Below the pieces are notes generated by a model. The model saw only the letters and a program-made list of their open reading frames with translations. It had not been told where the DNA came from and searched no databases. A program made the translations under genes and the position numbers. From positions 186,001 through 250,000 of the IMG/VR virus record IMGVR_UViG_3300020178_000002: DNA of 64,000 nt; one strand, given 5' to 3'. Below are positions 3,088 to 23,723 of this stretch, one piece after another (position 1 is the stretch's first letter; every line of letters begins with the position of its first letter).

Positions 3088-4737
3088 TTATAGTCTTAAG
3101 AACCTTTTCCATCCACCCATTGCTTTTTCAGAACCGACAACAAGAAGGGAGATCAGCCAAGCAACCAGCATCGCTTGATACTGACCTGCTGTGAGGTAAT
3201 CTTTAAAAGTAAATAAAGCAAACAGAGAACCTAGTGTGCTGTGGTCAAAGAACATGAAAACTGTTTTAACCAAAAGCTTTGCTTTACTCGCACTTAGTTT
3301 TAATAGGCGAACCATTGTTTTTACAAATGTAGCTTCTGCTTTTTCATAATCTAAAGGGGTCTCTCCTATAATCCTTTGTAATCTCCCCCCATGAAAGAAC
3401 ATCCATTCATCAATAGTAAAGATCAAATCCTTGTAGTAGTTCTCTGGGCTTGTTTTAACTTCTTCCGCTTTAGCTTTCTTCTTTGCCCATGTCATCAAAC
3501 TATTCAAAGTATATTTTCTGCCGTTCTCATTTCGAATTGTAATATTTGATTTTAGTTTTTTACAGGCAGTGAATCTCACAAGCGTTAAGTTGTACCTTTC
3601 CAGATCTTTAGCTAGAGCTTCTTCTGCTTTGTCGAAAGCAATATCTTTCCAATAGTCAAGTTTAGTTTCTAATCCCTTTCTCATCTTTTCTTTATCTGCA
3701 GCAGGGATTTCTTTTTTCTCAAGCTTCTTAAGAAGTTCCATAAGGTAATCAGATTTATTAAAGAGAGCAGAGATTGTAGCATTGTTCAATAAAGATGCTT
3801 CTCTTACATTTGAAGGTATTGGCATTGGGTTGAACTTTGAAGCTAATTCAACCATCTCCCTATCTTCATGGACTAACCTTTGCCTATACCAATCACCACC
3901 CATAGTAATGAGAGCATAATTGGTTCTATCAAGATTTCTTTCTAACTTAGCTAAGTTCTTTGGCAGGGCTTGTAAGTTATCACCGATGTGCTTATAGACT
4001 TCTTCCCTCAAAGGAGATTTCTCTAGTGAGCTAAGAAGCTGGTTGACAGTTAATCTGATAATGTGTGCTTCAACCCTAGCTTGAGAGACACCACTTGATA
4101 AGATTGACCAGCTAGCTTGGCTTGAACCAACTCTCTTAAGTCTTTGTAAATCACTTTGGGCAGACTCCCAGAAAAGGTTCGGAGCTTCCATTGTCTTGAA
4201 AAAAAGAAAAAAGAATCCAGACCCGAAGATCTTTAAGCCAATCTTTAATAGGAGAGCACCTACTTTCCCATACCTCTTAAGCTTGTTTTTCACATATCGA
4301 ATCTCTGACCCTTTCTGTGGGTATTTAGGTTCTTCACCTAAGAGAGACTGCAAAAAGCTACCATGCTTAATCATCCATGCGTCAAAAATATCATAGAGAT
4401 CCTCAGCCCACTCTTTTGCATCTTCATCATTTCCAGGTGCAGAGAAGTTAGTTTCATGTCTATATAAGAATGTTTGTATTGAAAATACTTCACCAGTTAA
4501 GAAGGGAAAGTCACTCTGATCCGCATAGGGTACAAAGAAAGGCTTTTTTAGCCTTAGCTTTATATTCCAGAGCAAGCTCTTTTTCAGATCAAAACTAACT
4601 AAATCTATACCTAAGGGCTTTAACGCTTTCTTCAAATCTTCCTTAGCAATTTGGATTTCAGAAGCTTTCAACTTCTTCATTTCTTCTAGTATCTTCTTTG
4701 CTTTCTCGATTTCAGTGTTCATAATAACTCCTACCAC
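3088..4737 (-). CDS. hypothetical protein with C-terminal hydrophobic helices (549 aa), probable virion protein
   Basis: Long ORF with hydrophobic segments near the C-terminus and an internal REAS motif. Confidence 0.7.
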   Translation of the reverse strand: MVGVIMNTEIEKAKKILEEMKKLKASEIQIAKEDLKKALKPLGIDLVSFDLKKSLLWNIKLRLKKPFFVPYADQSDFPFLTGEVFSIQTFLYRHETNFSAPGNDEDAKEWAEDLYDIFDAWMIKHGSFLQSLLGEEPKYPQKGSEIRYVKNKLKRYGKVGALLLKIGLKIFGSGFFFLFFKTMEAPNLFWESAQSDLQRLKRVGSSQASWSILSSGVSQARVEAHIIRLTVNQLLSSLEKSPLREEVYKHIGDNLQALPKNLAKLERNLDRTNYALITMGGDWYRQRLVHEDREMVELASKFNPMPIPSNVREASLLNNATISALFNKSDYLMELLKKLEKKEIPAADKEKMRKGLETKLDYWKDIAFDKAEEALAKDLERYNLTLVRFTACKKLKSNITIRNENGRKYTLNSLMTWAKKKAKAEEVKTSPENYYKDLIFTIDEWMFFHGGRLQRIIGETPLDYEKAEATFVKTMVRLLKLSASKAKLLVKTVFMFFDHSTLGSLFALFTFKDYLTAGQYQAMLVAWLISLLVVGSEKAMGGWKRFLRL

Positions 4738-5465
4738 TTAATCTTGAACTTGATTTTTATTTGAGTGTCTTCACTGACGACACTTTCGGGAGGTCGAGTA
4801 TCGAAGTTATAGTTCAGCTCATTTACTACTGAAAATACCTTATTGATCTTGAACTCAATAGACCCTGTAGTCAGTATTCTGTAGTCTGAAAAGTTGTTAA
4901 ACAAAGGCTGATAATAGGTGATAATCTGACCTTTGATGTGATCATCCCAACTTTTTCCAATCTTCAAATAAGAAGTCCCTCTCGGGTTTAAAGATTTTTT
5001 ATTTGAACCTTTAATCTTCTCATAATCAGACATTCCCCCTATGCCCACAGCTATTAATTCTTTCAAGAAAGTAAATCTTAAACCACAACCTGTGAGCTGT
5101 CTCAAAGTAAGGAGTTTAAAATCATCTTTCTGGAATTGAGTGAATACCTCTGTTCCTAAATTACTCCACCACATTGCTGTCCATCTTAAGTGAGAATAAG
5201 ACTCGTTTTGAAAGGTACTCTCTTGGTTTTCACCATGAGAAGTAGAGCCTATAATCAAACCATGATGGATATCTCCTACAAAGTCTAACCTAAGACCTGC
5301 TTGGTATTGAAAGACACTTACGTTCCCTCTTTGAAGGAAGAGACTAGATTCCACAGACCCATGAGATCCTTTAGGTTTAGAACCTCGATCACTTTCAATA
5401 TTAACGACCTGCCCATAAGAATATAAAGGCAGAGAAAGTAAGATAGACAGCAACAAGTTTCTCAT
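4731..5465 (-). CDS. outer-membrane beta-barrel protein, DUF481/YdiY-like
   Basis: Signal peptide MRNLLLSILLSLPLYSYG-Q, alternating beta-strand pattern, C-terminal beta-signal ending IKIKFKIKW. Confidence 0.7.
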   Translation of the reverse strand: MRNLLLSILLSLPLYSYGQVVNIESDRGSKPKGSHGSVESSLFLQRGNVSVFQYQAGLRLDFVGDIHHGLIIGSTSHGENQESTFQNESYSHLRWTAMWWSNLGTEVFTQFQKDDFKLLTLRQLTGCGLRFTFLKELIAVGIGGMSDYEKIKGSNKKSLNPRGTSYLKIGKSWDDHIKGQIITYYQPLFNNFSDYRILTTGSIEFKINKVFSVVNELNYNFDTRPPESVVSEDTQIKIKFKIKW

Positions 5466-5953
5466 AGCAAATCTACTTCAACTACAGGAGGGTGGTTTTC
5501 TAAAAGTAGCTTTGCAAAAGGACATCTTTTTCTTTTAGCATAGGCTTTCAAAAAAGGAAGATGTTCTCTATCTCTTGTGTGTAAAGAGTGTGCAATCTCT
5601 CCAGCATATAAAATGAGGTCTGAAATTGACTTGTGACAAGCTTTTACACAAGAAGGTTTATATCCCATAGGTCCTTTCAAAACCCTAACAGGGGCTTTAT
5701 TTATGAGACATTGACCAGAGAGTGCTTTTGCAGCAGGACATCTACTAACATTCCCTCTCATGGCAAGATAAGAACCAGATTCTTGGTGCTTATTCTCTAG
5801 AGACCTAGACATAGACTCAGTTTTCTTCTGCAACTTGCGTATTGCAGATTCGACATCTCTTTGCACAGCTTTACTAAAACCAAACATTCCAGAGGCTGCT
5901 TGCTTTTCCATGTGTAGAGAGGCAACTCTTTGAATACGATTCATTATAGCCAC
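5462..5953 (-). CDS. hypothetical protein with RVASL...EKQAA leader
   Basis: 163 aa ORF coupled to both neighbours; Cys-containing internal repeat (RCPAAKAL / RCPFAKLL). Confidence 0.7.
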   Translation of the reverse strand: MAIMNRIQRVASLHMEKQAASGMFGFSKAVQRDVESAIRKLQKKTESMSRSLENKHQESGSYLAMRGNVSRCPAAKALSGQCLINKAPVRVLKGPMGYKPSCVKACHKSISDLILYAGEIAHSLHTRDREHLPFLKAYAKRKRCPFAKLLLENHPPVVEVDLL

Positions 5954-6897
5954 CTTGCTTTCTTTTTTTTAACAAAGCGACCTTTGGCCATACCATCTTG
6001 AAGATTATGCTCCTGGATGTTCTGATTTAATCTGGCTGGGTTGAGTTTGCCTTTATTATATGCACCCTCATAGTAAGCCATTTCAGGATGTTTCTCTAAG
6101 TGATCTTCCCATTCTTTTTTAGTCCACTTACGACCAGCCATTCTTTCCTCTTCTTCTGAAAAGAGGTCGAATGCAGACTTGTGCTTTTCTTTAACATCTT
6201 TATACTTTTCAGTATTGGCATCAAAGATTTCTGCGTCTTCTGGATTTTCCTCTTTCCACTTTAACCACTCTTTTCTTCCTTTAGGACCTTCATGGAAGCG
6301 ATTGGTCTTGTAGAACTCAGAAAAGTGTTCATCAGCAAAGCGATGTGACCCTTCATGGAAACCATCTTCGTGGTGATGATGGTGATCATGATGGTGGTCG
6401 TGATGGTCATCATGATGGTGTGTTTTATGAGTATCTCTATACCCAAAGTATCTCGCAACATCAGTAAGAGCAGCGTGTGCGTGAGAGATTTTGTCTTCTA
6501 CCCAATCATCTAAGTGGGGAGAATCTTCCATCATCTCCATCAACATATCAAGTTGGTCATGCATCTCCCTAAGATTTTGCCTACTCATGTAAGAGTGGTC
6601 ATGCTCATCATGTCCAGCATATTTCGAAAGATCACTATCTTCTGCCCAGAAGTGATCTTCGCCATCATATAAAAGGTAAGATGCATTTTTCTTGTTAATG
6701 CCCTCAACTAAACAAGAGCTGTCACCATAGCTAACAACATCTCCTTCAGAAAAAGCCATTCTTGAGGGGAGTGTGCTGTCCTCATAGTCTTCTTCTAAGT
6801 AATCATCTTCAATCAGCTCATCCTCAGCGAGGAAGTCAGCAGCTCTTTTATCGTGAAAGTATTCTCTTTCAATTTGGTCAAAAATATCATCTCTCAT
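5944..6897 (-). CDS. acidic, His-rich putative virion polyprotein
   Basis: AAGGAG RBS; poly-His/Asp tract HHHDDHHDHHHDHHHHH; six [KR]-x-A sites (KRA, RMA, KYA, RFA, KSA, RMA). Confidence 0.75.
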   Translation of the reverse strand: MRDDIFDQIEREYFHDKRAADFLAEDELIEDDYLEEDYEDSTLPSRMAFSEGDVVSYGDSSCLVEGINKKNASYLLYDGEDHFWAEDSDLSKYAGHDEHDHSYMSRQNLREMHDQLDMLMEMMEDSPHLDDWVEDKISHAHAALTDVARYFGYRDTHKTHHHDDHHDHHHDHHHHHEDGFHEGSHRFADEHFSEFYKTNRFHEGPKGRKEWLKWKEENPEDAEIFDANTEKYKDVKEKHKSAFDLFSEEEERMAGRKWTKKEWEDHLEKHPEMAYYEGAYNKGKLNPARLNQNIQEHNLQDGMAKGRFVKKKKARWL

Positions 6898-7227: not shown

Positions 7228-7300
7228 AACTAAAGACCATATGTTAAAACCTATTTCTTTAACATATGACCTAAAGGAAAGGGTCTGTCAAATATTTTTA

Positions 7301-7520: not shown

Positions 7521-7937
7521 TTAAAATTCCTTATCAAAAATAGGTCGGACATTAGGTCTGGGGTATTTTAGTTTGATCTCTGCCTTCACAGGAAGGTAGT
7601 CTCCTACAGAGAGTTTATCGAAAAGAAGGTATGCCCTGTTATATTCTTCGTAAAACCATTTTTGGATTTTCTTTTTCCCTCTGACTTCACTTACAACAAC
7701 AGACACAAGTGTTTCATCATCATGTATAAAATAAACGAATCCCCCAGCCTCTCCTCTTTTGACACCATTTATAAGAGGCTCTATTAAACCCACTGTTTTG
7801 AAATCAAGCATAAGACCATCCCAATTTTTAGATTGGGGTTTTTTTGCCAAAGCTCTCGCCTTGTCTTTAGCCCTACTATTTGATTGTCTCTCAAGACTAG
7901 CAACTCTAATTTCGAGATTCTTTAATATTTCTCTCAT
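7521..7937 (-). CDS. hypothetical protein with LEIRVASLERQS leader
   Basis: 138 aa; start coupled to the upstream gene's stop. Confidence 0.7.
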   Translation of the reverse strand: MREILKNLEIRVASLERQSNSRAKDKARALAKKPQSKNWDGLMLDFKTVGLIEPLINGVKRGEAGGFVYFIHDDETLVSVVVSEVRGKKKIQKWFYEEYNRAYLLFDKLSVGDYLPVKAEIKLKYPRPNVRPIFDKEF

Positions 7938-8278
7938 AATGTACCATCAAAGTCTTCATCTGGCTCTGGTTGACCTAAAGGTTTGGTTGGACTTTTAGGT
8001 GCAGGTGGTTTACCTCCACTGTTTTGCTCAAGAGCTGTTGTTGCTACATGAGTGTATTTGTCTAATGCTGCTTGACCTAATATATAGCCAATCTGTATGA
8101 AGCCACTTGTGACTATCATGGTAACTAGAACCATAAAGGCATAATGGTCAATTTGGGTTTTATATTCCCAGACAACATAAAACATGAGGATCTTCCAACC
8201 GATGTCTGCAATCAGATAGGCTAGGAACTTCTTGCTTTTAAGGGGGAGCTTCATTACATCTTCAACTTCTTTATTCAT
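7934..8278 (-). CDS. two-TM membrane protein (holin-like topology)
   Basis: Two hydrophobic helices and a Pro-rich charged tail. Confidence 0.6.
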   Translation of the reverse strand: MNKEVEDVMKLPLKSKKFLAYLIADIGWKILMFYVVWEYKTQIDHYAFMVLVTMIVTSGFIQIGYILGQAALDKYTHVATTALEQNSGGKPPAPKSPTKPLGQPEPDEDFDGTL

Positions 8279-8628
8279 AATCTCACCTTCAACTTAGATT
8301 TAGGGTTGCTTTGGTTTGCTTGCTGGTTAATTAAGTTTCGATTAGGGTTTCGAATTGCCAGCTTGTTCATAGATTTTTGGAAGTCATCTTCAACAGCTTG
8401 GTCATACTTTTGAGGTGCTCTGCTGAATGCATATATTTCATTCAGCCTTTCCTGCTCAAGTTCAGTCATTGAGGGCAAGAGAGCTAAGAAATCATCTCTT
8501 GCTTTCTGGTTACCATCAGAAAGAAATTCCATGATGAGGTATGCAGGCAATATAGGAGGGTTATCAGGGTCTCCCTCTATACCCTTAAGGGTATTAACCC
8601 CTGTTTTTCTTATCCAATAATTCATCAC
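8275..8628 (-). CDS. hypothetical protein (117 aa)
   Basis: ORF coupled to its neighbours. Confidence 0.65.
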   Translation of the reverse strand: MMNYWIRKTGVNTLKGIEGDPDNPPILPAYLIMEFLSDGNQKARDDFLALLPSMTELEQERLNEIYAFSRAPQKYDQAVEDDFQKSMNKLAIRNPNRNLINQQANQSNPKSKLKVRL

Positions 8629-9088
8629 CAGACTCTTTTTCTTTCTTAGATTTTGGAATCCACTCTGCTACTACACCTTTAAGTTCCACATCTTCCTCTG
8701 TCTTTGTCTTAATAACCCCACCATAGTTGACAAAGACAGAGAGCTTCTCAATAACAGCAGTCTGGAGTTCAAAGATTTGTTCCCGAAGCATTTGCATTTG
8801 GATCTGGGCATCTCTTAACCTTCCAATAAGTGCTTCTCTATCTGCATTTGCTTTTGCCAGCTTATCCTTCAAATCTTCAACTTCAGAAGGATCACGACCA
8901 GATGCAATAGCCATCATTGATGAAATAGAGCCTGTGATAACACCCAAGATACCAACAAGGACATCTCTATTTTGATCAACAATCTGCACATAGCTTAGGA
9001 AAACTATAAGCATAACTACTATAACTAAAAAGAATACAGAGAACCACCATCCTCTTTTGACTTTCAAATCTTCTTTATTGTCATTCAT
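8594..9088 (-). CDS. two-TM protein with coiled-coil tail
   Basis: WWFSVFFLVIVVMLIVFL and VLVGILGVITGSISSMMAIA helices, then a heptad-rich segment. Confidence 0.7.
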   Translation of the reverse strand: MNDNKEDLKVKRGWWFSVFFLVIVVMLIVFLSYVQIVDQNRDVLVGILGVITGSISSMMAIASGRDPSEVEDLKDKLAKANADREALIGRLRDAQIQMQMLREQIFELQTAVIEKLSVFVNYGGVIKTKTEEDVELKGVVAEWIPKSKKEKESGDELLDKKNRG

Positions 9089-9103
9089 GCCTAAACTCTT
9101 TTC

Positions 9104-9958
9104 TCAAGACGCTATTGTCTTGCTGAAAGCTTCTTTAATCATCTCAATAAAAAAAGAGATATAGTCCACCCACCAAAAATAATGGTCTACTCCCCATAGT
9201 TTTCGAGCACTTGGGTTGCTTAGGAATGGATACACCAATGCAATCATATATATAAGGTTTATGACAGCAAGTCTCTGCATAACCCACCACAGGTGTTCTT
9301 TTAACTTCCTATCTCTCATCCTGCTTTTAATTTTTCTTGGGCCACCTATCCTCTTTACTTTTTCAGAAGATGGGGGAGGCTGTAAAGACTCAATAGTTTT
9401 TCCCACAGCGTATACCTCTTGTGGTTCTCTTACACCCTTAAACCTATACAAGCCAACACAAACATACCTTGTTCCTTTAGGAAGAATTCCATTGATACGC
9501 TTTCTTAAATTAATAACGGCTTCTTTTGTTAAAAGAATCTGCTTTGCTTGACATAAGCTCATAGTACGAGCAGCTATGTTTTTTGATAAGCCTTCCAACT
9601 CCACTCTTTTAGCACCAGCACCTACAAACAGGTCATCTTGTTTAACTTCAACAATCTTTCCCCAGTGGATACCTATTCTACTGTTAAGATTCAATTTGGC
9701 AGGTATCATATCTTGATATGCCAGAGCGAAATTTACAGCATCTATAGTCCTCTCAAAAGAAAGTAGAAAGCCATCAGACCTATCAATCTCTCTTCCTTGA
9801 TACTTATAAACTAGAGATCTTGTCATTCGGTCATGTACTTGAAACCATTGAGCAGCGACATGAGCACCATTTTTTTGAACAAAAGCAGTAGACCCTATTA
9901 TATCTAACAAGACTATAGCTAAATATCTTTCTTTCATGTCTACTGTAATAGGTCTCAT
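9104..9958 (-). CDS. class III nucleotide (adenylate/guanylate-type) cyclase with C-terminal TM helix
   Basis: LLDIIGST (first metal Asp), RSDGFLLSF (second Asp), RIGIHWG, GLSKNIAAR (Asn/Arg), YRFKGV. Confidence 0.85.
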   Translation of the reverse strand: MRPITVDMKERYLAIVLLDIIGSTAFVQKNGAHVAAQWFQVHDRMTRSLVYKYQGREIDRSDGFLLSFERTIDAVNFALAYQDMIPAKLNLNSRIGIHWGKIVEVKQDDLFVGAGAKRVELEGLSKNIAARTMSLCQAKQILLTKEAVINLRKRINGILPKGTRYVCVGLYRFKGVREPQEVYAVGKTIESLQPPPSSEKVKRIGGPRKIKSRMRDRKLKEHLWWVMQRLAVINLIYMIALVYPFLSNPSARKLWGVDHYFWWVDYISFFIEMIKEAFSKTIAS

Positions 9959-9962
9959 CAGT

Positions 9963-10166
9963 CTACTCCCACATATCTCTTATTTCATCACAGGGAGTAT
10001 TTAAAACTTCGTTGGCATTCTTAATGGTGCATTTAATCAAACGAGGTCTAAAGCCTAAGCAACTTTCAATATGATCTAAAGCTTGGTCGCAAGGGCTTCT
10101 ATAAGAATCTGTATTTAAACTTCCTTCACAGGACAACAATAATAGGGATATAAGTATCTTTCGCAT
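9963..10166 (-). CDS. small Cys-rich lipoprotein
   Basis: GAGGAG RBS before ATG 10166; MRKILISLLLLS-C lipobox-like signal and four further Cys. Confidence 0.65.
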   Translation of the reverse strand: MRKILISLLLLSCEGSLNTDSYRSPCDQALDHIESCLGFRPRLIKCTIKNANEVLNTPCDEIRDMWE

Positions 10167-10498: not shown

Positions 10499-10852
10499 TC
10501 AAATCACCGATATGATATTATTTGAGGGTAAGGTTTGAGCTGGTGGTCTTACTGATATTGTCTGCTCGGCAAAAACCTCACTATCGTCTGCAACCAACAG
10601 AGCCTTATATTCAACAAAGAGTGTCTTCCCAGAGCTATCACTTGGAATCTCTAGTTTAGTGACATACCTATGTGTCTGGTCTGTCTGTTGCATTAAGACA
10701 GGACCGCTTAAAATGGTTCTTACAACCCCATTGTAAAGAAAGAGGGTCGCAGTCACATCTTTAACAGCTAAGGGCTTCGAGTCAGAGTTTAGCCATGAAA
10801 CTTGACAAGGGTGCGATTCACTTGCGGTTGCATTTGAGAAGTAAGTTATCAT
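10499..10852 (-). CDS. hypothetical beta-rich protein, probable virion component
   Basis: AGGAGG RBS; preceded by a promoter-like motif. Confidence 0.7.
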   Translation of the reverse strand: MITYFSNATASESHPCQVSWLNSDSKPLAVKDVTATLFLYNGVVRTILSGPVLMQQTDQTHRYVTKLEIPSDSSGKTLFVEYKALLVADDSEVFAEQTISVRPPAQTLPSNNIISVI

Positions 10853-10879
10853 TAGACCTCCTTTTTAGAAGTCTAATGA

Positions 10880-10893
10880 TATAATAACTATTA
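10880..10893 (-). promoter_or_regulatory. putative late promoter motif (TAATAGTTATTATA, short variant)
   Basis: Same bipartite motif with the spacer shortened by 2 nt. Confidence 0.4.
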
Positions 10894-11399: not shown

Positions 11400-12071
11400 T
11401 TAAAGTACGTTACCTTCACCATCATATACTACCACATAAGGGTCAAGGTTGACACCATTAACTGTGCGAGTACTCTTCATAAGAAGAAGATCACCTTGAG
11501 CTACAGAAATCCAAAAGCTTGAGTCTTCTTCTAGGACTGGTGACATGATGCTATAGTCAAAGAAGCTTGTAGTCAAAGGCTGGAATGCACCCCCAACTTC
11601 AACTACATGACCTGCTGGAACAGTGTATCTTGCACCTGCAACGATTTGAAGAACATCTTCAACAGTTGCAGTAGAAGTAGCTACTCCAATACCTGCTGTA
11701 GCTACTTCAGCAGCAATCAAAGCATTGATCTGTGCAAGCGTGAGTGAGTTACCTGCAACCATTCTAGCAATGATAGCATCAGCAATATCTTTTGCATTTG
11801 CAGGGGTAATTGCAGCACCTACTGCTGGGTCAGCAGAACCATCATCAAGGTTCACTAAAAGATAACCAGCTAAACCACTAACTTCTTGAGTCACGACACC
11901 ACCAACTACTACAGGAAGAGTCGCAGTCTCAACTACTCGTAAGTAGCGAGGACCTTGAGCAACAGGGTCTAAAACAGGGTTAGCTTGTGATCTATTAGGC
12001 CAAAGGTCTTTAACCATAAGCTGACCATTACTGATTGAAGCATCACGAATACAAATTGCTGGACTTGCCAT
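11400..12071 (-). CDS. virion-like structural protein, paralog 3 of a tandem triplet
   Basis: Ala/Val/Gly-rich; shares DL.P..SQ.N...GP.Y, IADAIIAR...SLTLA.IN and VYDG motifs with the next two genes. Confidence 0.75.
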   Translation of the reverse strand: MASPAICIRDASISNGQLMVKDLWPNRSQANPVLDPVAQGPRYLRVVETATLPVVVGGVVTQEVSGLAGYLLVNLDDGSADPAVGAAITPANAKDIADAIIARMVAGNSLTLAQINALIAAEVATAGIGVATSTATVEDVLQIVAGARYTVPAGHVVEVGGAFQPLTTSFFDYSIMSPVLEEDSSFWISVAQGDLLLMKSTRTVNGVNLDPYVVVYDGEGNVL

Positions 12072-12089
12072 AATTTATTCTCCTTTATA

Positions 12090-12797
12090 TTAAATGTAGA
12101 GTGAACCGTCGTCACCATAGATGACGACTAAAGGTGCTGCAGTGCCAGCAACTGTTCTTTCTTGGGCTTTTCTAAGCTGACCTCTTTTAGCAGAGATCCA
12201 GAAAGAAGGGTTGTTGTCAAAGTCAGTCCAAAGGCTAGAAGCGTCAGCAGGGTCTGAGAAGAAGCCTGCTTGAGCTGGAGCACCTAAAGCTACAAAAACA
12301 CCACCATTTTGGATGTCTTGCCCTGCTGGGACAGTAAATACTTTATATCCAGATACAATTTGAAGAACTTCTTCAACTGTGCCTGTTGAGTTTCCTAAAG
12401 TACCATCAAGATCATTACCAGCACCGATTTCATCTACAATAGCAGAATTGATATCAGCTAATGTTAAAGATTGAGCTGATTCCATTCTAGCAATGATAGC
12501 GTCAGCTATTGCTTGTGCCTCAGGAGCAGTAAGAGCTACAGTTGCAGCATCTGTATTCTCGACAGTAGTCAAGATATATACTGCTAAACCTGAGAAATTA
12601 GCTGTGGTGGCAAAGTTACCATCGAGAGCAACATCTTCAGTTATATCACGACTATGTGCATAAAGGTATGCAGGACCTTTAAAGTTAGGTGTGATTGTAG
12701 CATTAGATTGAGTTTTGTGAGGGTGTAGGTCTGTAATCTGAACAGAAACACGACCATCTGTAGAGTTAAGAACTCTAGGTGTACACATGAAAGGCAT
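12090..12797 (-). CDS. virion-like structural protein, paralog 2 of a tandem triplet
   Basis: Same shared motifs; AGGAG RBS. Confidence 0.75.
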   Translation of the reverse strand: MPFMCTPRVLNSTDGRVSVQITDLHPHKTQSNATITPNFKGPAYLYAHSRDITEDVALDGNFATTANFSGLAVYILTTVENTDAATVALTAPEAQAIADAIIARMESAQSLTLADINSAIVDEIGAGNDLDGTLGNSTGTVEEVLQIVSGYKVFTVPAGQDIQNGGVFVALGAPAQAGFFSDPADASSLWTDFDNNPSFWISAKRGQLRKAQERTVAGTAAPLVVIYGDDGSLYI

Positions 12798-12808
12798 ATT
12801 AATTCTCC

Positions 12809-13522
12809 TTAGCTGTAGATTGAGCCATCGTTATTGTAAACAGTGAGAAGTGGAGAGGTTGAGCGAACCCCAGCGAACAGATCGCCATTTACAGCATCTC
12901 TAACTGTGGTCAAGCCTCTTAAAGAACCCTCTGAGAAAGAGATTTTCCAAGAAGCATCATTTGGAACAAGGTTACGCATGGTTGAGCCTAAAGTACCTGG
13001 AGAGATAACAGCAGAGAATGTGCCATTAGCAGCTTGAACAGGAATACCACCTGCAACAGTGTACTCCTCACCAGCAAGAATTGAAAGAATGTCAGTAAGA
13101 ACAGCAGTTGAGTTGCCCTCACCGATACCTGAACCTGCACTCACACCATTACATACACCATTAACAGCAGCAACAGTAAGACTTTGACCAGCACGAACTC
13201 TTGCAAGTAGGCCATCAGCGATCTCTTCAGCTTCAGCTATTGTCAAAGCATCTGCAGCACCATTAGGAACTGCTTCAATGTTTGCAACTAAGTAAGCTAC
13301 AAGACCCTTCGCTTCACGAAGAAACTCTGTTGATGTATCAGCGTTTACTTTAATAATAGGTCTTGAAGCACCTGTAGAGCCTATGTTAGCTACACGAACA
13401 TAGAAAGGACCTTGACCTTTAGGGTCATTCACAAGGTTTCTTTGTGAGTCATTTGGAAAAAGATCTGTAACTTGAACAGACCCATTTTGAATTTCACTTC
13501 TTCGAGCAATTATGAAAGGCAT
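12809..13522 (-). CDS. virion-like structural protein, paralog 1 of a tandem triplet
   Basis: Same shared motifs; AAGGAG RBS; promoter-like motif upstream. Confidence 0.75.
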   Translation of the reverse strand: MPFIIARRSEIQNGSVQVTDLFPNDSQRNLVNDPKGQGPFYVRVANIGSTGASRPIIKVNADTSTEFLREAKGLVAYLVANIEAVPNGAADALTIAEAEEIADGLLARVRAGQSLTVAAVNGVCNGVSAGSGIGEGNSTAVLTDILSILAGEEYTVAGGIPVQAANGTFSAVISPGTLGSTMRNLVPNDASWKISFSEGSLRGLTTVRDAVNGDLFAGVRSTSPLLTVYNNDGSIYS

Positions 13523-15997: not shown

Positions 15998-18900
15998 ATG
16001 AAAAATCTAAGTCTGAGACCTGAGATCGAGTTATTTAAATTCTACCTAGCCATATATGGTTTTAAAAGAAAAGGGGGTTCTGAAAGAACTTTAAAAGCTG
16101 GAGCTGATTTATTGAAGAGAAGAACTGACATCAGAAACAATATTATAAAGTCTATTGTTTCGCCTCTTACAGAAGATGTACAGGTTTTTAAAACACTCCC
16201 TAACGTATTAAGAAATAGATTAAGAGGTTCGGCTGGGTCAGAGGAACAAGCTGTTGGCTTAGGTGAAATATTTTATAGTATCTGTTTATACTACTCAAGC
16301 AGAACAACCAAGGTAAAAGAAACCCTCACAGACTCAAAAGAGAGGGGCTATTTTCTGTCTGCTCTCCAAGCCTGTTCTAAAGAAGGTGTTTCACTAAATA
16401 TCTTAATGGGAGACAACCTAAAGGACAAGAGACTTAAGAAATGGGTTGAGAAAGCAAGTGTTGAAGTTAAAGAGTCTACACTTACAGAAGTAAAGGTAAA
16501 TCAACTTAAAGAAATTGAGACTATCTCTAAAGCAATTAAACTTATAGAGAGCAGAATAAAGTCTCCTGATACAACAGACATTGAAAGAATTTCTTTACTT
16601 AAGGAAAAAGAAAAGAGGATGCAATCGCTAGAATCTGCAACTGAAAAAATGGGAGAGGATTCTCCAGCAGCTCTTGCGGTTGTGACTTCTATCTTGAGTA
16701 AGAAATCTGACCACTTAACAGATACAGGTAAAAAGCAAGGTCTGAGCACCGAACAAGAAGACGTTCTTGTTTCAAAGGGAGAGCTAGAAGTTTCTGCTGG
16801 TGCAGGCTCGGGTAAAACTAAAGTGATTGCTAGTAAGGTAGCTTACACAATCCAAGAATTAAATGTCCCATCTGATAAAATGATTGTAGTGTCTTCAACA
16901 AAAGAAAGTTCAGATAACCTAAGAGAAAAGGTTATAAGCTACAGTGGTGCTAATTCAACAGGAAGATTTGTTGGGGTCACCCCAGAGTCCGTTGCATTCA
17001 GTATTCTTGATGAATCTGGTTATTTAAGAGACAAGAACCTTATTTTAGAAGAAGACTTGAGCGAGTGGGTGGATGCATCCATTGAGCAAGTAAGACAGGG
17101 CGAAGGCTCTGAAGCACCTGTAAAGCAAGCAATGTTAAGGAAAGCTTCTATTGGAGAAGATCCAAGACTAAAACCTCTCCTTATTAAAGTTGCAAGAGTC
17201 ATTGCTGAAAAGGCATATCTAACAGAAGCCCCTAATCTCCTGTCCTTAGTTTCTCCTGCTGTTAAAGAAATTTCAGATGGTGAGATTAAGCTTGCTGATG
17301 GCTCAGACTCTATATGGGATGATTTGAACTTTAGGTCTTCTATAAATGATTATATCTCTACCTCTCAAGGAAAAGAAATTCTCAAGTCTGCAAAACCATA
17401 CTCTCAGTTTAGTAGGTTTGCATCTATAGGTTCTAAACCACCTAAGTTAGCTTCTGGTAGGAATGAATGGTTTAACTTAGGTTTTGACCCTATGAGCAAT
17501 GTTTCTAAACCCAATACAAATGAGATGAAAAAGTATATCCTCCAGAAGCAAAAGCAAATGGTATCTGCTTCTGACCTCTGGGCTAAGAGAGATAAAAACC
17601 CACCTCTATCTATCAATCAACTCGAAAAGAGAATTGAAGAAGATATGAAGATAGCGACTTATGGTGCTTTTGAATATCTTAAGAAAGAACAAGGGTCTGT
17701 GGATAGGAGAGATTATGCATTACTTGCAAGTCAAGCTTTGATTGACAATCCTAAGATCTTGGAAAAGATGAATGAAAAGTATTCTCATATCTTTATAGAC
17801 GAAGCTCAGGATTTAAGTAAATCTGAAAAGACTATGTTTGACTTAATCGCAGGCTCTTTAGACCCTAAGACCTTAACTCCCAAAACAGCTTCTGCTGAAA
17901 GCTATTTGTTAATAGGTGACTCTAACCAAAAGAATACTAAAACTGCAAGTGAAGCCAAAAAAGCTGTTCTTACTACTAACTATAGGTCAAGACTGAATAT
18001 AGTAGAAGCAGCTAATAATATCATATCTCCAAGTCTCTTGAGTTGTGAAGCTAGTCCTTACAAAGATGGTGGAGAGATCTACTACAAGATATGTGAGGAA
18101 GGTCTTAGTCCAGGTAAAGAAGAAATAACTCAAGAGATCAAGCAAAAAGTTGAGTTTGAGGGTTGGGTTCACGACAATGAAAACCACAAGTTTGGAATTG
18201 TATGTAGATCCGAAAAAGAAGTAGTAGGGTATGCTTTAGAACTGATGATCAACAAAGTATCTTGTAGTACCAAACATGATATTTTAGATACAGGTTCTGT
18301 TAATGCTCTCACACATATTCTTGGCATAAAGTCTAACAACCCTCTTACTCAATATAAGTCTGTTTGTAATATACACAAATACTTAGACTTTAACCTGCCT
18401 GAAGACTTCAACGACTACCTTAACCCAGAGGGCGAAAGTGTATTAGATGCCCTCTTAAATGAAAGCTTTGCTTTCTCTAAGAGTAAAGAAGTGAAAAGCT
18501 ATGTAGATTACTTAATGAAAGTAATTGAGTATGAAGGAGATTTAGAAAGTCTTTTAGAGTATCTGGCTTTTGAAATCAAAGATGCAGATGACGAAGAGCT
18601 TTTCAAAAAGAATCTTTTAACAAAAGAGGAAAAGCTCTTTTTAGAGAAAGAAGCAATGGGAGAAAAAGTTAGCTCTTATGAGAAGCTTGAATACTTAAAG
18701 TCTGGTTTAGGATTAGTTGCTAGAATCTTCTCAGAGAAAGATTGGATGATTGAAGAAGGTCTTGATTATATGGAGAGCATGAAGAAAGTTTCTAAAATGT
18801 CTTCAAAAGAAAGAGACTTAAATAGAGTCTTAATCAGAACTTGTGAGCAGTGGAAAGGCTTAGAGTGTAGAGATATTTATGTTTCTATGACTCCCACAAG

Positions 18901-19123
18901 ATTCCCTAGAATAGGCTTAGATCTTCAAGGTGAAGAAAAGCTGGGTTATTTAGCTATCACAAGAGGGCAGGACAAAGTTAAAGTCCTTTGTGGAGGAGAC
19001 ACACCTTACTTAGTAGAGAAAGCCTGTTTACTCTCAGAAGAAGAATTCTTAAATAAAACCTCTCAACCAAAGAGTGCAAGCTTTGTTGATGCTATGACTC
19101 TTTGGTTAGAGGAGAATCAGTGA
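15998..19123 (+). CDS. divergent UvrD/PcrA-like SF1 helicase with N-terminal extension
   Basis: AGAGSGKT, DEAQD, LIGDSNQ, TNYRS, KGLE and YLAITRG motifs. Confidence 0.8.
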   Translation: MKNLSLRPEIELFKFYLAIYGFKRKGGSERTLKAGADLLKRRTDIRNNIIKSIVSPLTEDVQVFKTLPNVLRNRLRGSAGSEEQAVGLGEIFYSICLYYSSRTTKVKETLTDSKERGYFLSALQACSKEGVSLNILMGDNLKDKRLKKWVEKASVEVKESTLTEVKVNQLKEIETISKAIKLIESRIKSPDTTDIERISLLKEKEKRMQSLESATEKMGEDSPAALAVVTSILSKKSDHLTDTGKKQGLSTEQEDVLVSKGELEVSAGAGSGKTKVIASKVAYTIQELNVPSDKMIVVSSTKESSDNLREKVISYSGANSTGRFVGVTPESVAFSILDESGYLRDKNLILEEDLSEWVDASIEQVRQGEGSEAPVKQAMLRKASIGEDPRLKPLLIKVARVIAEKAYLTEAPNLLSLVSPAVKEISDGEIKLADGSDSIWDDLNFRSSINDYISTSQGKEILKSAKPYSQFSRFASIGSKPPKLASGRNEWFNLGFDPMSNVSKPNTNEMKKYILQKQKQMVSASDLWAKRDKNPPLSINQLEKRIEEDMKIATYGAFEYLKKEQGSVDRRDYALLASQALIDNPKILEKMNEKYSHIFIDEAQDLSKSEKTMFDLIAGSLDPKTLTPKTASAESYLLIGDSNQKNTKTASEAKKAVLTTNYRSRLNIVEAANNIISPSLLSCEASPYKDGGEIYYKICEEGLSPGKEEITQEIKQKVEFEGWVHDNENHKFGIVCRSEKEVVGYALELMINKVSCSTKHDILDTGSVNALTHILGIKSNNPLTQYKSVCNIHKYLDFNLPEDFNDYLNPEGESVLDALLNESFAFSKSKEVKSYVDYLMKVIEYEGDLESLLEYLAFEIKDADDEELFKKNLLTKEEKLFLEKEAMGEKVSSYEKLEYLKSGLGLVARIFSEKDWMIEEGLDYMESMKKVSKMSSKERDLNRVLIRTCEQWKGLECRDIYVSMTPTRFPRIGLDLQGEEKLGYLAITRGQDKVKVLCGGDTPYLVEKACLLSEEEFLNKTSQPKSASFVDAMTLWLEENQ

Positions 19124-20232
19124 TCGAGTCCTCTTTCACAAAGAGGGCAAATCTCACCCATAGAAGAAAGAAGACCCTCAAGATCTGCTACAATAGTAGC
19201 AAGGTTATCTTCTAGGGTAGAGATACTAGAGGCAAGAGCCTTTCTCTCTTTTGTGATATCTAAAGAGTCATCTGCTTTAATATCAGGAAGCTCTAAAGAT
19301 AAAACAGGTTCAATCTCTGAAATAGCCCCTAGAAGATCTTTTCTTTTAGACTGAACACTTTCTAAGGAAGAAGTGTCTGGGATTGATTCAGGGAGATCTG
19401 GGAAGCTTTCTAAGCCTACTCCTATAGACATTGTAGTCATGAAGTGTTTGTTTCTTTCAATATTTAATGCAGTCAGCTCTTTAAGAGATTCTTGCAAAGA
19501 AAGATCCACATTAGGGAGTTCTACATCACCAAGATCCTCTAGAATTTGAATGCTCCTTAGATACTGATTTCTCGCATCCCTAACTCTTGAAAGAGAGTCG
19601 GCTTGAGAAAGAAAGGTTTCTGCTTCTTCCTCAAGTAGGTTCTTTTCTTCTAAGATAGACTCTAAATCAGAAATACCTTCAAAGTTAGCTTCCTTTTCTT
19701 TTTCAAGAAGAAGATCTTCATTCTTAACTTTGAGTCTGGTCTTAGCTTTTCGAGTATCAGAGTTAGCTAGGTCAGAAGCCTTTTCAAGAGCCTGTATCTT
19801 TTCTACATCTGAAAGAGCAGAAGATAAGACACTTGGGGGCATATCTAAAAGAAAGATTTGCTCAAACTGTTTAGCAACTTGAGGCCAAACCTCTTTCCCA
19901 GAAACATCAACAGAGACTACACCAGATGCTTTTACCTCATCTGGAACAGAAGAACCTACCTTGTCTATGAGTTCTCCATCTACAAGGTAGTTGTTTACAC
20001 CCTTGCCTTTTCTCCATTCGATAGTCTTAGAGTCTCCAAAGTCAACAAGGACAGAAGAAAACTTCTCACCTATGCGAACATGAGAGTGCCCTCTAGTGTT
20101 AGAAAAGACTCCAGTTAAAGCTCTAGCACAGGCTGACTTACCTGTGTTATTAGCACCTGAGATAACAGTAAGTCCTTTTACCTCAAATTCTGCTTCTTTG
20201 ATGGACTGATAGTTTTCTATTTTCACTTTCAT
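19117..20232 (-). CDS. SbcC/Rad50/gp46-like ATPase, N-terminal half ending at the zinc hook
   Basis: IENYQSI...GANNTGKS Walker A, coiled coil, terminal CPLC; no signature or Walker B motif. Confidence 0.8.
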   Translation of the reverse strand: MKVKIENYQSIKEAEFEVKGLTVISGANNTGKSACARALTGVFSNTRGHSHVRIGEKFSSVLVDFGDSKTIEWRKGKGVNNYLVDGELIDKVGSSVPDEVKASGVVSVDVSGKEVWPQVAKQFEQIFLLDMPPSVLSSALSDVEKIQALEKASDLANSDTRKAKTRLKVKNEDLLLEKEKEANFEGISDLESILEEKNLLEEEAETFLSQADSLSRVRDARNQYLRSIQILEDLGDVELPNVDLSLQESLKELTALNIERNKHFMTTMSIGVGLESFPDLPESIPDTSSLESVQSKRKDLLGAISEIEPVLSLELPDIKADDSLDITKERKALASSISTLEDNLATIVADLEGLLSSMGEICPLCERGLDH

Positions 20233-20268
20233 ATGACACCTCTAAACTATCATACCTAGAAGATAGGG

Positions 20269-21480
20269 TTAGCTTCCAAAAATCTCATTGATTTCATCTA
20301 GAGCGTCACAAGCGTCACCTTCAAGAGCATTTGCATCAGAGGCATCTTCCACATCTTTGGTCTTAGAAGTGAGGTATGGCTTTACTTGTGCAAACATAGT
20401 AGACAACCAATCCTCTGGGAGAAGATTTCGGAAGTTATCAAGACCTTGACCTTTATACTCTTGACCACTCTTAGGGTCTGACCATGTATACCATGCACCA
20501 CCTTTTTTAATCAAGCCCACAGTGATTGCAAGCTCAAGGACAGTACGCTCATTGTCTACACCAATACCATTTACAAGGTAGAAGTCTGCTTCATGCTTAT
20601 AGGCATCTGAAACCTTACACTTATCCAGAACAGCACGAACAAGATTACCTTTTACAGTATCAATCATCTTATTTTGAAGACCATCCCACTCTTTACCTCT
20701 ATCCTTACCTACAACTTTAAGCATCATCTTTAGTGTAGAGTAGTAAGTCCAAGCTTGACCACCTTGTGGCTTGCGAGTAGGTCCGCCACCAAAGCCACCC
20801 ATACCACCAATCGCTTCACGCAACTGAGATATACCAATGACAGCAGTGCCTGTTTTAGAAATCACACGCTTGAATAAAGGTAAGAACTGAGACCATTGAC
20901 GAGCAAGCAAACCAACGGCTGCTTGGTCTCCAGCTTCTTTTTGAGCCATCTTCTCGGGCACACCTGCACCCACAGAGTCAACAACAATAAGATCAACCCC
21001 AGCTTGTGCAAACTTAACCATGAGCTTAAATCCTTGCTCAAGGGTTTCAGGCTGAAGAAGCATGAACTTGCTTTTGTCTGTGACAGGAACACCGAGTTTA
21101 GAAGCATAACGAGGTTCTACTTCATTTTCCCAGTCGATATACACACATGTACCACCTTCAGAACAAGCAGTTGCTGCTGTCTGTAAAGCGATAGTGGTTT
21201 TACCTGCACCAGCCAAACCATAAATGTTTGTAATGCGACCTCTTGGAATACCTGGACAAGGGCGAACACCTTGTGAGTTTTCTTTACCACCAATGAGGTA
21301 GTCAAGGGCAACAGAACCTGTGCTGATATGTGCCATAGAGCTTGACAGTGAGTCAATGTCGAGTTCAACAAGAGAGCTTTCGCTTTGTCCTTTTTCTGCT
21401 TCTTTTAGCACAGCAGAGAGGTCAATCCCTTTTTTTGTTTTAGCACTTGTACTTTTTTTGCTTGTGGCTTTCTTTGCCAT
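20269..21480 (-). CDS. recA: RecA recombinase
   Basis: GIPRGRIT.IYGLAGAGKTT, VVDSVGA, SQLREAIG, GG.A..YYST, NGIG, GAWY. Confidence 0.95.
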   Translation of the reverse strand: MAKKATSKKSTSAKTKKGIDLSAVLKEAEKGQSESSLVELDIDSLSSSMAHISTGSVALDYLIGGKENSQGVRPCPGIPRGRITNIYGLAGAGKTTIALQTAATACSEGGTCVYIDWENEVEPRYASKLGVPVTDKSKFMLLQPETLEQGFKLMVKFAQAGVDLIVVDSVGAGVPEKMAQKEAGDQAAVGLLARQWSQFLPLFKRVISKTGTAVIGISQLREAIGGMGGFGGGPTRKPQGGQAWTYYSTLKMMLKVVGKDRGKEWDGLQNKMIDTVKGNLVRAVLDKCKVSDAYKHEADFYLVNGIGVDNERTVLELAITVGLIKKGGAWYTWSDPKSGQEYKGQGLDNFRNLLPEDWLSTMFAQVKPYLTSKTKDVEDASDANALEGDACDALDEINEIFGS

Positions 21481-21604
21481 GTTTTAATCTCCTTATTAAA
21501 TACAGTAATACTCACCTTATAAAATTAAGGTAAGACCTCAATAGTTTTTGTGTTCTTTTTAGGTGGGTGTTGCTTAACCTATAGAAATGTAAAGGACTTT
21601 CAAG

Positions 21605-21823
21605 ATGAAAAACGAAGACACCGATGAAATCATAGATTCCATACTCAACATACCTGATGTGGAAGGATTGCGTGAATGGAAGACTACACCGACACCTAGC
21701 AAGGTTGTTAAAGAAGTGAACATCATAGATTTGAAAGGCAAGAGATTTAAGTTTCCAGGTCATTTTTTAATGACAGAGGAAAATGGGTCTATTACCTTTC
21801 AAGCAAAGAAATTAAAAGAATAG
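21605..21823 (+). CDS. hypothetical protein (72 aa)
   Basis: AAGGA RBS; fills the gap between two minus-strand genes. Confidence 0.55.
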   Translation: MKNEDTDEIIDSILNIPDVEGLREWKTTPTPSKVVKEVNIIDLKGKRFKFPGHFLMTEENGSITFQAKKLKE

Positions 21824-21826
21824 TCT

Positions 21827-22306
21827 CTAGCGATTGTCCCCAGAACCACCAATAACACCCCTAGCTTTCCTATCTAACAGCTTGTCCATATTCTCCTCTG
21901 CAATCTGAGAGAGATTCAGACCAAGTTCATCAGCAAGACGAGCAGCATACCAAAGTACATCTCCGATTTCAGAGGACATAGCTTGTACCCATTCTTCTCT
22001 GGTCATTTTGCTATCTCCATCTCGAATCCATTTCTTCATCTTACCTGCAACCTCACCTGCTTCAGAAGCAATGCCTAGTGAAAGGTAGACCATAGCAAAT
22101 TCTTGTGGGTACTTTGCAGTCTGAGCTGTGGCTTTCTGATAGCCACTAAAAGTCTCGTTAGAGAAGGGAACAAGATTGTTCTCTTTGATATATGCTTCCA
22201 CACTCTCTACACTGCCAGCAGATTCAATAATATCTTTGAGAGTTAGAATTGTTTCAGATTTGTTTACAAATTTCATTTTTAGATCCTTGTATCTCTTAAA
22301 ACTCAA
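21827..22306 (-). CDS. MazG-like nucleoside triphosphate pyrophosphohydrolase
   Basis: LGIASEAGEV..K.KK, EIGDVLWY, EN..KL..R..RGVI.GSGDNR. Confidence 0.9.
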   Translation of the reverse strand: MSFKRYKDLKMKFVNKSETILTLKDIIESAGSVESVEAYIKENNLVPFSNETFSGYQKATAQTAKYPQEFAMVYLSLGIASEAGEVAGKMKKWIRDGDSKMTREEWVQAMSSEIGDVLWYAARLADELGLNLSQIAEENMDKLLDRKARGVIGGSGDNR

Positions 22307-22313
22307 ACAAGTC

Positions 22314-22781
22314 TTACAGGATTGGAGTTTGCTCAGAGTCAGAGGCTTCTTCTTCCTCTTCTTCAGGGTTCAAGTTAACATCAACTCTCCAATTACCATT
22401 ACGCTCAATCTCTTGAGAGAAGTAGAAGACATCTGGGGTTTGGATAAAGTATTTCATTTCTCCAGTCTTTTCATCTTCGACACCACCAATAAAGCAAAGA
22501 AGATGATCAAGCAAAGCTCTGCGGTGCTCATCATTCAACAATGCCCAACAGTCATTAGCGAGGGTGATTACAAACTTGTATTCACGTTCTCCAAGAACTG
22601 AAAGAATTGCAGGTGCTTTTGCAGTAGTACCCATGATTGGAGTCTCTCCCTTACGACTTGCTTTATCTTTGAAGATAATAGCAATGTCATCCATCACATC
22701 AACAAGGTGAGGATGGCAGTTTCCAACCAGATCGTGAAGAAGTTCATTTGTTAGGCTTGATGCTTTCCATTTTTCGGACAT
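22314..22781 (-). CDS. putative phage metallopeptidase-like protein (HExxH degenerate)
   Basis: FVITLA..CW..L....R.ALLDHLLCFI pattern; the expected HExxH reads HLLCF. Confidence 0.55.
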   Translation of the reverse strand: MSEKWKASSLTNELLHDLVGNCHPHLVDVMDDIAIIFKDKASRKGETPIMGTTAKAPAILSVLGEREYKFVITLANDCWALLNDEHRRALLDHLLCFIGGVEDEKTGEMKYFIQTPDVFYFSQEIERNGNWRVDVNLNPEEEEEEASDSEQTPIL

Positions 22782-22828
22782 AAATATTTCCTTTTTTAAG
22801 AGTTAAAGATGTTTCTTGTTATATGATT

Positions 22829-23074
22829 TCAATCTTCATCCTTGAAAAACTTGGACAAAGACTCTCTGACCTTTATATCTACCATTGTGAGTATACTTTC
22901 AATGTATAAAAATATGAGCATCATAAAACTAGGGTCTACACAAAGATATATTCTAGTAAACAGTTTCATCTGTTCAACACTTGCTTCATTGTCTTCACTG
23001 AAAATAAAAGTAGTGTCTCCATCTTTGTGTACTACTATTATAATATCTTCTTTGCTGATGTTTTCATCTTCCAT
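22829..23074 (-). CDS. hypothetical protein (81 aa)
   Basis: ORF in operon. Confidence 0.55.
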   Translation of the reverse strand: MEDENISKEDIIIVVHKDGDTTFIFSEDNEASVEQMKLFTRIYLCVDPSFMMLIFLYIESILTMVDIKVRESLSKFFKDED

Positions 23075-23404
23075 TCAAATACCACTTTCTAAGTAACTCT
23101 CTCGAATAAGATGGAGTACCTTATTTCCCACTTCATGGTATTTTGTTTTACCATTGTAAACCACACCCCACATCTTATCTTTACAAATAATGTTGTGATA
23201 CCATGATCTCTCATTTTGTAGAGTAACAATAACCCTCATTTGATTGCACTCTCTATGAACGAATTCAAATAGCTTATCTGGGGGGTTTAAGTAAACAAGC
23301 TCATACCCTGCTTCCTCTAAAAGAACAATAAGATAAGTAGGGTAAGAAAAATCCCCTATATATTCCAGACACACACGCTTTCCATTTTTGATTTCAGATA
23401 ACAC
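23075..23404 (-). CDS. hypothetical protein (109 aa)
   Basis: AGGAGG RBS. Confidence 0.6.
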   Translation of the reverse strand: MLSEIKNGKRVCLEYIGDFSYPTYLIVLLEEAGYELVYLNPPDKLFEFVHRECNQMRVIVTLQNERSWYHNIICKDKMWGVVYNGKTKYHEVGNKVLHLIRESYLESGI

Positions 23405-23456
23405 AACATCTTGCCTCCTGTTTCTTTGACTACAGGAGGAGAGTATCTAACCTATA

Positions 23457-23723
23457 TTAATCTGAATCTGTGACTAGGAAGCCCATCTTTCTTAGTCTTA
23501 GAGATAAGTCTGCTAGCTTTAAAGGGTCATTTGAAGTAACTATCAATCTGTTTTCATTAACAATTTGAACAGACCAGCCTTCATAGATTAAAGACCTAAC
23601 AAATTTCTCTGGGAATGGGGAGTCTTTTGCATGCACAGTAATATCATATTGATGTTGCATCACACTCTCTATCCACTTTTTGACAATATTCTTGGGCAGA
23701 ACAGCTTTTTCTTCTTTATTCAT
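23457..23723 (-). CDS. hypothetical protein (88 aa)
   Basis: ATGA coupling to the upstream gene. Confidence 0.6.
   Translation of the reverse strand: MNKEEKAVLPKNIVKKWIESVMQHQYDITVHAKDSPFPEKFVRSLIYEGWSVQIVNENRLIVTSNDPLKLADLSLRLRKMGFLVTDSD

Follow-up and report, generated by a model that had tools for sequence, protein, structure and literature searches.

A two-gene cassette in an uncultured jumbo phage joins a new form of class III cyclase, phage-specific and membrane-anchored, to an obligate, uncharacterised membrane partner. The genes lie in a window of 64,000 nucleotides, bases 186,001–250,000 of the 312,136-bp IMG/VR record IMGVR_UViG_3300020178_000002; on its minus strand, positions 9104–9958 encode the 284-residue cyclase and positions 8594–9088 the 164-residue partner. 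A preliminary description, made from the letters of this stretch alone, had taken the DNA for phage, and the direct terminal repeats of the record bear this out. The cyclase and its partner are strictly co-inherited, and the cassette is horizontally mobile accessory cargo of several unrelated phage lineages. Judged by its sequences, the pair is probably a phage-made cyclic-nucleotide signalling module. Our leading reading, to which we give a probability of roughly 0.4, is that it is a self-contained cassette of signal and membrane effector by which the phage governs what becomes of the infected cell, with superinfecting competitor phages as the most plausible target.

The linkage of the two genes was assessed in 86 IMG/VR loci that encode a relative of the cyclase, with all open reading frames (ORFs) compared with the genes of the window. 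The partner is present in 81 of these loci. In the other five the contig breaks off within 400 bp past the cyclase, and so all 81 informative loci have the partner next to the cyclase. The genes overlap by 4 nucleotides in 38 loci and would usually be translationally coupled. Departures from plain adjacency consist of reversed order (L088), a methyltransferase gene between the two (L007 and L131), and an insertion of 1.4 kb (L126). Counting these loci together with those of a second survey, described below, about 140 loci show no instance of one gene separated from the other. The preliminary description had set the cyclase in a wider membrane-protein cluster, flanked by a lipoprotein and two proteins with two transmembrane (TM) helices each, and was prepared to abandon the idea if these neighbours did not accompany the cyclase in other genomes. 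It had the ORF positions right, five minus-strand ORFs occupying 7934–10166, but the linkage holds for the 164-residue protein and fails for the other two. The lipoprotein occurs in 16 of the 86 loci, always directly upstream of the cyclase, and the 114-residue 2-TM protein (7934–8278) in 6, among them a 30%-GC jumbo phage (L126) where its position is rearranged; both are confined to close relatives. All loci with the lipoprotein, the two genes upstream of it, or the 117-residue or 114-residue protein belong to phages that also share the RecA or other neighbouring genes of the source phage, and the wider cluster is therefore best regarded as the lineage-specific surroundings of a universal two-gene core. 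That the cyclase is functionally tied to a TM protein, as had been proposed, is supported by its unbroken co-occurrence with the partner.

The cyclase family occurs in 291 IMG/VR loci; among 50,697 GenBank phages, neither the cyclase nor the region was matched at the level of DNA or protein. Clustering of neighbouring genes, together with annotation, places the pair in at least five unrelated gene contexts ranging from 28 to 45% GC: beside RecA in the source jumbo lineage; in a 255-kb phage of 30% GC; in a phage of about 137 kb and 28% GC, with PurA/PurB-like genes; among ribonucleotide reductase (RNR), ThyX, PhoH, and deoxynucleoside kinase genes in phages of 70–250 kb; and, most commonly, between the large terminase and a Mu-type portal in small phages (contigs up to about 36–38 kb). 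A survey anchored on this portal, and run independently of the cyclase, yielded 63 loci whose upstream sequence was long enough; the two genes occur together in 56 of them and are both missing from 7, and no locus has one without the other. Where the pair is missing, the gap between terminase and portal holds a C5-methyltransferase, a sigma-like gene, ThyX with dCMP deaminase, or nothing. In this lineage, then, the pair is dispensable cargo at a hot-spot, gained and lost as a unit.

Three side observations concern the carriers of the pair. The terminase–portal gap of the small marine phage lineage is a hot-spot for other cargo as well, including a D12 DNA methyltransferase (examples of the gap are L168 3545–4693, L220 4059–4511, and L221 1482–2601). 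Two pair-carrying contigs (L151 5163–7323 and L156 10753–14271) have adenylosuccinate-synthetase-like and adenylosuccinate-lyase-like genes, with IMPDH also in L156, and these purine genes raise the possibility of a PurZ-type pathway for a modified base (2-aminoadenine). Near the pair in a related jumbo-phage contig (L154 13134–16259, minus strand) is a 1041-residue gene with intein-splicing and LAGLIDADG domains.

By its sequence and predicted structure, the product of 9104–9958 is a class III cyclase with a complete set of catalytic residues, and it is apparently catalytically competent. It matches Pfam PF00211 (E = 8e-6; 26 bits against a cut-off of 21.9) and the N-terminal cyclase domain of NCBIfam TIGR04510, a family named as a putative peptide-modification-system cyclase (E = 2e-43); the latter match spans profile positions 7–204 only and, at 148.9 bits against a cut-off of 400, the full-length TIGR04510 architecture of about 814 residues is absent. 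An AlphaFold2 (AF2) model of the protein, with a mean predicted local distance difference test score (pLDDT) of 82, superposes on the cyclase domain of Rv1900c over 171 of 172 residues (Z = 22.4, root-mean-square deviation (rmsd) 2.0 Å), and a profile of 19 cyclase homologues matches the solved Rv1900c and Ma1120 at E ~2e-10. These two class IIIc mycobacterial adenylyl cyclases (1YBT and 4WP8) are the best matches in sequence and also in structure (Z 21–22, rmsd ~2 Å, whole domain). They share the fold, the metal-binding Asp pair, and the Arg with the phage cyclase, at an identity of only 22–26%; unlike them, the phage cyclase has its catalytic domain at the N terminus, followed by a TM anchor, and has no lipase or other regulatory domain.

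Catalytic residues were assigned through hidden Markov model (HMM) alignments to Rv1900c and Ma1120, and invariance was judged over the 19 homologues. The metal ligands D19 and D62, the transition-state pair N127/R131, and K174, the terminal, phosphate-binding Lys, are all invariant. So are the two residues at the positions that select the base: D59, in the motif EIDRSDG, replaces the purine-selecting Lys of '..K..GD', and E120 occupies the second specificity position, which is D395 in Rv1900c. Where adenylyl cyclases have Lys/Asp and guanylyl cyclases Glu/Cys, the phage enzymes thus have Asp/Glu; Ma1120 has the Lys (the titles of its entries name a KDA residue triad) and Rv1900c has Asn/Asp. 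Because D59 and E120 fill these positions, the product is not readable from the sequence. The preliminary description had already pointed to the two metal Asp residues, the Asn/Arg pair, the missing base-selecting Lys, and a C-terminal TM helix, and each of these features stands; that the product specificity is atypical too, as it also proposed, is a conjecture. Between the catalytic domain and that helix runs a near-invariant basic linker (invariant columns L192, Q193, P194, P195, K200, K202, R203, G205, G206, I210, and D216), and the tail beyond the helix is variable. At least 771 homologues of equal length are 60–83% identical to the cyclase, and some members of the family are already labelled 'class 3 adenylate cyclase' in databases.

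Comparison of GTDB genomes with the IMG/VR loci indicates that the cyclase family is phage-specific. A scan of 185,579 GTDB species-representative genomes with the single cyclase protein returned nothing, and an alignment-based scan returned relatives of at most 41% identity (33–41%), over residues 14–204 only. These are the N-terminal domains of proteins of about 1000 residues with STAND/TPR (AfsR-like) or Ser/Thr-kinase regions, and they come from Rubrivivax and other Burkholderiales, Lysobacteraceae, Vicinamibacterales, and Sumerlaeota. Such TIGR04510-like proteins, the nearest cellular relatives, agree with the phage cyclases in Asp59, Glu120, the other catalytic residues, and the motifs EIDRSDGF and ELEG (the cellular loci were found by the EIDRSDGF pattern, so this motif was selected for), but they have Pro or Ala in the column where the phage cyclases keep the canonical Asn127. 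The phage proteins in turn lack their C-terminal 600–800 residues and have the TM anchor instead. Maximum-likelihood analysis groups the phage cyclases in a single clade (support 100/100), weakly sister to the Sumerlaeota cyclase-kinase domains, with a stem of 2.24 substitutions per site and short internal branches. This shape is consistent with one capture event that was followed by rapid change and later by strong purifying selection.

The partner has 1369 homologues at E ≤ 0.001, and the best 120 of these are 63–96% identical to it. The second helix of its TM hairpin is rich in Gly, Ser, and Ala and almost invariant (G46, G49, T52, G53, I55, S56, S57, M58, and A60–P67), and the many invariant polar residues of the long helix that follows suggest that this helix offers a surface for interaction and is not simply a coiled coil. 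The AF2 model has helices at residues 3–33, 41–62, and 67–119 and, with a pLDDT of 66 and a predicted template-modelling score (pTM) of 0.27, falls short of what a fold search requires; a search of the ESM Atlas gave unnamed viral clusters only and no structural neighbour. The top domain match, and the only recurrent one, is SLATT_fungal, the 2TM effector domain associated with SMODS/SLOG nucleotide-signalling operons. It matches 20 of 20 family members below threshold (best E 2.4e-5), covering both TM helices and the start of the long helix; the partner encoded in the window scores 15.6 bits against a cut-off of 26.5 and is also matched, again below cut-off, by the NCBIfam SLATT_fungal model of the same family, and one homologue has a precomputed PF18142 match. 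We treat this kinship as a lead, not a finding. A weak PADLOC match of the partner to Drt5 (E = 0.0037) was judged uninformative.

An exhaustive profile search also recovered remote relatives of the partner, short 2TM-plus-helix proteins in other phage or Bacteroidota-like contigs. Three of their neighbourhoods hold no cyclase (a fourth contig is too short to tell), and this suggests that the partner fold may have a membrane activity of its own. One such relative (L224 4001–4357; 118 residues, two TM helices plus helix) lies in a temperate-phage-like contig with an integrase and no cyclase nearby, two genes upstream of a faint Peptidase_M15_4 match. The cyclic nucleotide monophosphate (cNMP)-binding domain PF00027 was found neither in the partner nor anywhere in the source-phage genome, and a search of four further carriers, including one complete record, also gave none, so these phages appear to encode no canonical receptor.

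In our leading reading, both proteins would enter the inner membrane of the host during infection, with their soluble parts in the cytoplasm. A cyclase dimer would make a 3',5'-cyclic mononucleotide whose base is not predictable from Asp59/Glu120, and the partner, as membrane effector or co-subunit, would be a SLATT-like two-helix protein that responds to an active cyclase by changing how permeable or how polarised the membrane is. By way of the pair, the phage could exclude or punish superinfecting phages, much as Pycsar and CBASS work, but with a phage-owned system built of different parts. We favour an effector role because the pair is unsplit, because both proteins are predicted to be located in the membrane, because of the SLATT lead, because partner-like proteins occur alone in other phages, and because neither the source genome nor the four other carriers yielded a canonical receptor. 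Several observations pull the other way. The cytoplasmic part of the partner, one helix and a short tail, is small for a specific nucleotide receptor. An identity of 60–70% across very different phages looks more like that of an enzyme or auxiliary metabolic gene (AMG) under purifying selection than that of a fast-evolving conflict gene, and the cassette lies in regions of replication, nucleotide metabolism, or packaging instead of in any recognisable defence island. The SLATT similarity, besides being sub-threshold, rests largely on the TM helices, where composition can mislead, and ten remote partner relatives have no SLATT match. A 1:1 complex prediction for cyclase and partner from their alignments scored 0.00, which gives no verdict and counts neither for nor against. 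A bolder version of the idea seems to us unlikely: that phages run a private cNMP immune or warfare system, in which phage-only membrane cyclases make a non-canonical cNMP, its base set by the Asp59/Glu120 pocket, that directly gates a receptor-less 2-TM effector and so kills the cell or seals it against competitors, or in which the product is a decoy against the cNMP-based defences of the host, the cassette spreading between unrelated marine lineages.

Among the alternatives, the one with the strongest claim, which we nevertheless consider doubtful, is an AMG-like takeover of the host, in which a flood of cAMP or cGMP would act on host CRP/CNBD regulators and reprogram metabolism, motility, or receptor expression. 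The partner would then be a scaffold, a dimerisation subunit, or a regulator of the cyclase, providing in trans the 'TM + coiled coil' module that is usually built in cis into class III cyclases of the membrane. The nearest solved relatives are adenylyl cyclases, and Rv1900c makes cAMP without the canonical Lys. The absence of a phage-encoded receptor is in keeping with a host target; cNMP-binding domains were found in 11 of 14 control bacterial genomes, and both the strong purifying selection and the company of ThyX, PhoH, RNR, and purine genes recall AMG neighbourhoods. Adenylate cyclases have in fact been reported as phage AMGs in the curli (type VIII secretion system, T8SS) clusters of pelagiphages, beside CsgG, CsgF, and FecR, where they are reported to group with alphaproteobacterial cyclases and seem to have passed from one phage family to another (Wittmers et al., 2022, PMC9599517). 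Those cyclases are, like the present one, encoded by marine phages. A curli link was rejected for the present family, CsgG being absent from the source genome and from four other carriers; the two groups of cyclases are here set apart by description, not by sequence. Against a takeover of the host, a diffusible signal to host regulators needs neither a membrane anchor nor a constant membrane partner, the pair is unsplit in every locus compared, and the specificity residues are Asp/Glu, not Lys/Asp. Control of lysis, also raised in the preliminary description, is improbable. The partner would be a holin or antiholin-like protein whose triggering the cyclase times or gates, and its predicted N-in/C-in two-TM layout and Gly/Ser-rich second helix are indeed what one expects of a small pore former; the small phages have the pair within a late packaging/head operon, and the faint Peptidase_M15_4 match two genes from one remote relative points the same way. 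The positional evidence does not follow, however: in a search of the source genome for three endolysin families, the only gene found was an Amidase_2 about 103 kb away, with no Phage_lysozyme or SLT match, and no endolysin adjoins the pair in any context examined. Moreover, 7 of the 63 related loci do without the cassette, as one would not expect of a primary holin.

The preliminary description had also called the layout Pycsar-like, and as a likeness this is fair. Pycsar consists of the cyclase PycC and a receptor that combines a cNMP-binding domain with TM or TIR modules in one fusion protein (PMC11224242). The phage pair, too, is a two-gene arrangement of a class III cyclase and a membrane protein in which the purine-selecting Lys is absent, and it may work similarly. 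It differs in being encoded by phages rather than in host defence islands, in the membrane anchor of the cyclase itself, and in a partner that has no cNMP-binding domain. Membership in Pycsar was rejected: the PADLOC Pycsar models match neither protein at E ≤ 1, no PycC structure is among the PDB sequence matches at E ≤ 10 or the top 50 structural matches, and the cNMP-binding domain is missing from partner and genome alike. Since the family was also not found in bacterial genomes in the GTDB scans, we think it very improbable that the pair is a bona fide Pycsar, or another known abortive-infection system, carried by a phage. SMODS/SLOG-SLATT (CBASS-like) operons offer a second likeness, in that a nucleotide synthase adjoins a stand-alone 2-TM protein, but their synthase is a CD-NTase/SMODS enzyme, whereas that of the phage pair is a class III cyclase. 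Least credible of all is that the cyclase domain has no catalytic activity and serves to bind nucleotides or as a structural module; nothing specific speaks for this beyond the modest Pfam score, and every catalytic residue is invariant across diverse homologues.

Hosts deploy cyclic-nucleotide conflict systems such as CBASS, Pycsar, type III CRISPR, and Thoeris, and phages answer with enzymes that destroy the signal or sponges that bind it. To our knowledge, cyclic-nucleotide signalling in the conflict between phages and bacteria has so far been known mainly from these host systems and phage counter-measures. The difference here is a nucleotide cyclase owned by the phage and always accompanied by one membrane partner; the contigs that carry it number in the hundreds, come from uncultured phages of marine and salt-marsh habitats, and range in length from about 36 kb to more than 300 kb. 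Whether the pair is an effector switch, a means of reprogramming the host, or a control on lysis, it would be a widespread means by which phages generate second-messenger signals in the cells they infect. The pair is small, and because its Asp/Glu pocket is also found in a large cellular TIGR04510-like family, identifying the product would annotate both families. A literature search returned no paper that characterises the cyclase family or the pair, and none that mentions TIGR04510.

The source record is a jumbo phage by its gene content, which includes RecA, a UvrD-like helicase, an SNF2 helicase, a clamp loader, a sigma factor, a NusG-like protein, ThyX, MazG, and a phage metallopeptidase. 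The closest match of its RecA, at 51.5% identity, is in a 485-kb 'uncultured phage' record, and salt-marsh, marine, and marine-plankton metagenomes dating from 2018 to 2025 contain DNA nearly identical to that of the record. The features of the block around the pair are collected in Table 1; promoter and terminator predictions are consensus matches only. One salt-marsh RNA library contains small, 100%-identical contigs across the block, including 9396–9592 within the cyclase; because their depth is about 3 and carry-over of DNA is possible, we do not count them as proof of expression.

Table 1. Features of the gene block containing the cyclase and its partner, in window coordinates.
Feature	Positions	Strand	Basis and remarks
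Terminator-like hairpin that would begin the transcription block with the pair	10847..10881	-	Consensus scan only
Two small genes, 106 and 117 aa	10177..10852	-	Upstream in the jumbo-phage lineage, 15/86 loci; only a weak Ig-like match
Lipoprotein, 67 aa, Cys-rich (6 Cys)	9963..10166	-	ATG start, lipobox LLS|C; lineage-specific neighbour, outside the core pair
Class III nucleotidyl cyclase, tail-anchored, 284 aa	9104..9958	-	PF00211, TIGR04510 N-terminal domain, AF2 model, homologues
Cyclase homology domain, residues ~10-190	9389..9931	-	HMM alignments, invariant columns, residue tally
Near-invariant basic linker, residues 192-224 (LQPP...KVKR.GG..I...RDR)	9287..9385	-	Invariant columns
Single cyclase TM helix, residues 229-248	9215..9274	-	Hydropathy; AF2 helix 207-247; hydrophobic but sequence-variable in the alignment
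Obligate partner, 164 aa: TM hairpin, long helix, short conserved tail	8594..9088	-	Beside the cyclase in 81/81 informative loci
Partner TM1 (~15-36) and TM2 (~42-63)	8900..9046	-	Hydropathy; invariant columns
Partner long helix, residues 67-119 (53 residues)	8732..8890	-	AF2; many invariant polar residues
Soluble protein, 117 aa, no TM	8275..8628	-	Lineage-specific neighbour; 7/86 loci; no family match
2-TM protein, 114 aa	7934..8278	-	Lineage-specific neighbour; 6/86 loci; two TM by hydropathy
Terminator-like hairpin that would close the transcription block with the pair	7234..7272	-	Consensus scan only

Elsewhere in the window, on the minus strand, is the gene of a DUF481 protein of the outer-membrane beta-barrel type that has a signal peptide (4731–5465; PF04338, E = 4e-10), preceded by a 549-residue protein without a family match (3088–4737). 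Homologues of both are held by L068–L070, and a similar layout, a 464-residue protein and then a DUF481 protein, lies 3–4 kb from the cyclase pair in the 255-kb, 30%-GC phage (L150). The DUF481 pair of genes, the lipoprotein, and the 2-TM proteins together make a notable set of envelope proteins in the source lineage. A 317-residue acidic protein (5944–6897, minus strand) has no family match and contains a long His/Asp run (HHHDDHHDHHHDHHHHHEDG) that might bind metal. At 11400–13522, again on the minus strand, are three tandem paralogues of 223–237 residues that have N- and C-terminal motifs in common and no Pfam or PHROG match; they are 63–76% identical to their counterparts in L068–L070. Finally, a dense replication and transcription block at 15998–27300 encodes a UvrD-like helicase, an AAA ATPase, RecA, MazG, the phage metallopeptidase, a sigma-70 region 4 protein, a NusG/KOW protein, a clamp-loader subunit, and ThyX, a set often seen in huge phages, which typically supply a large part of this machinery themselves.

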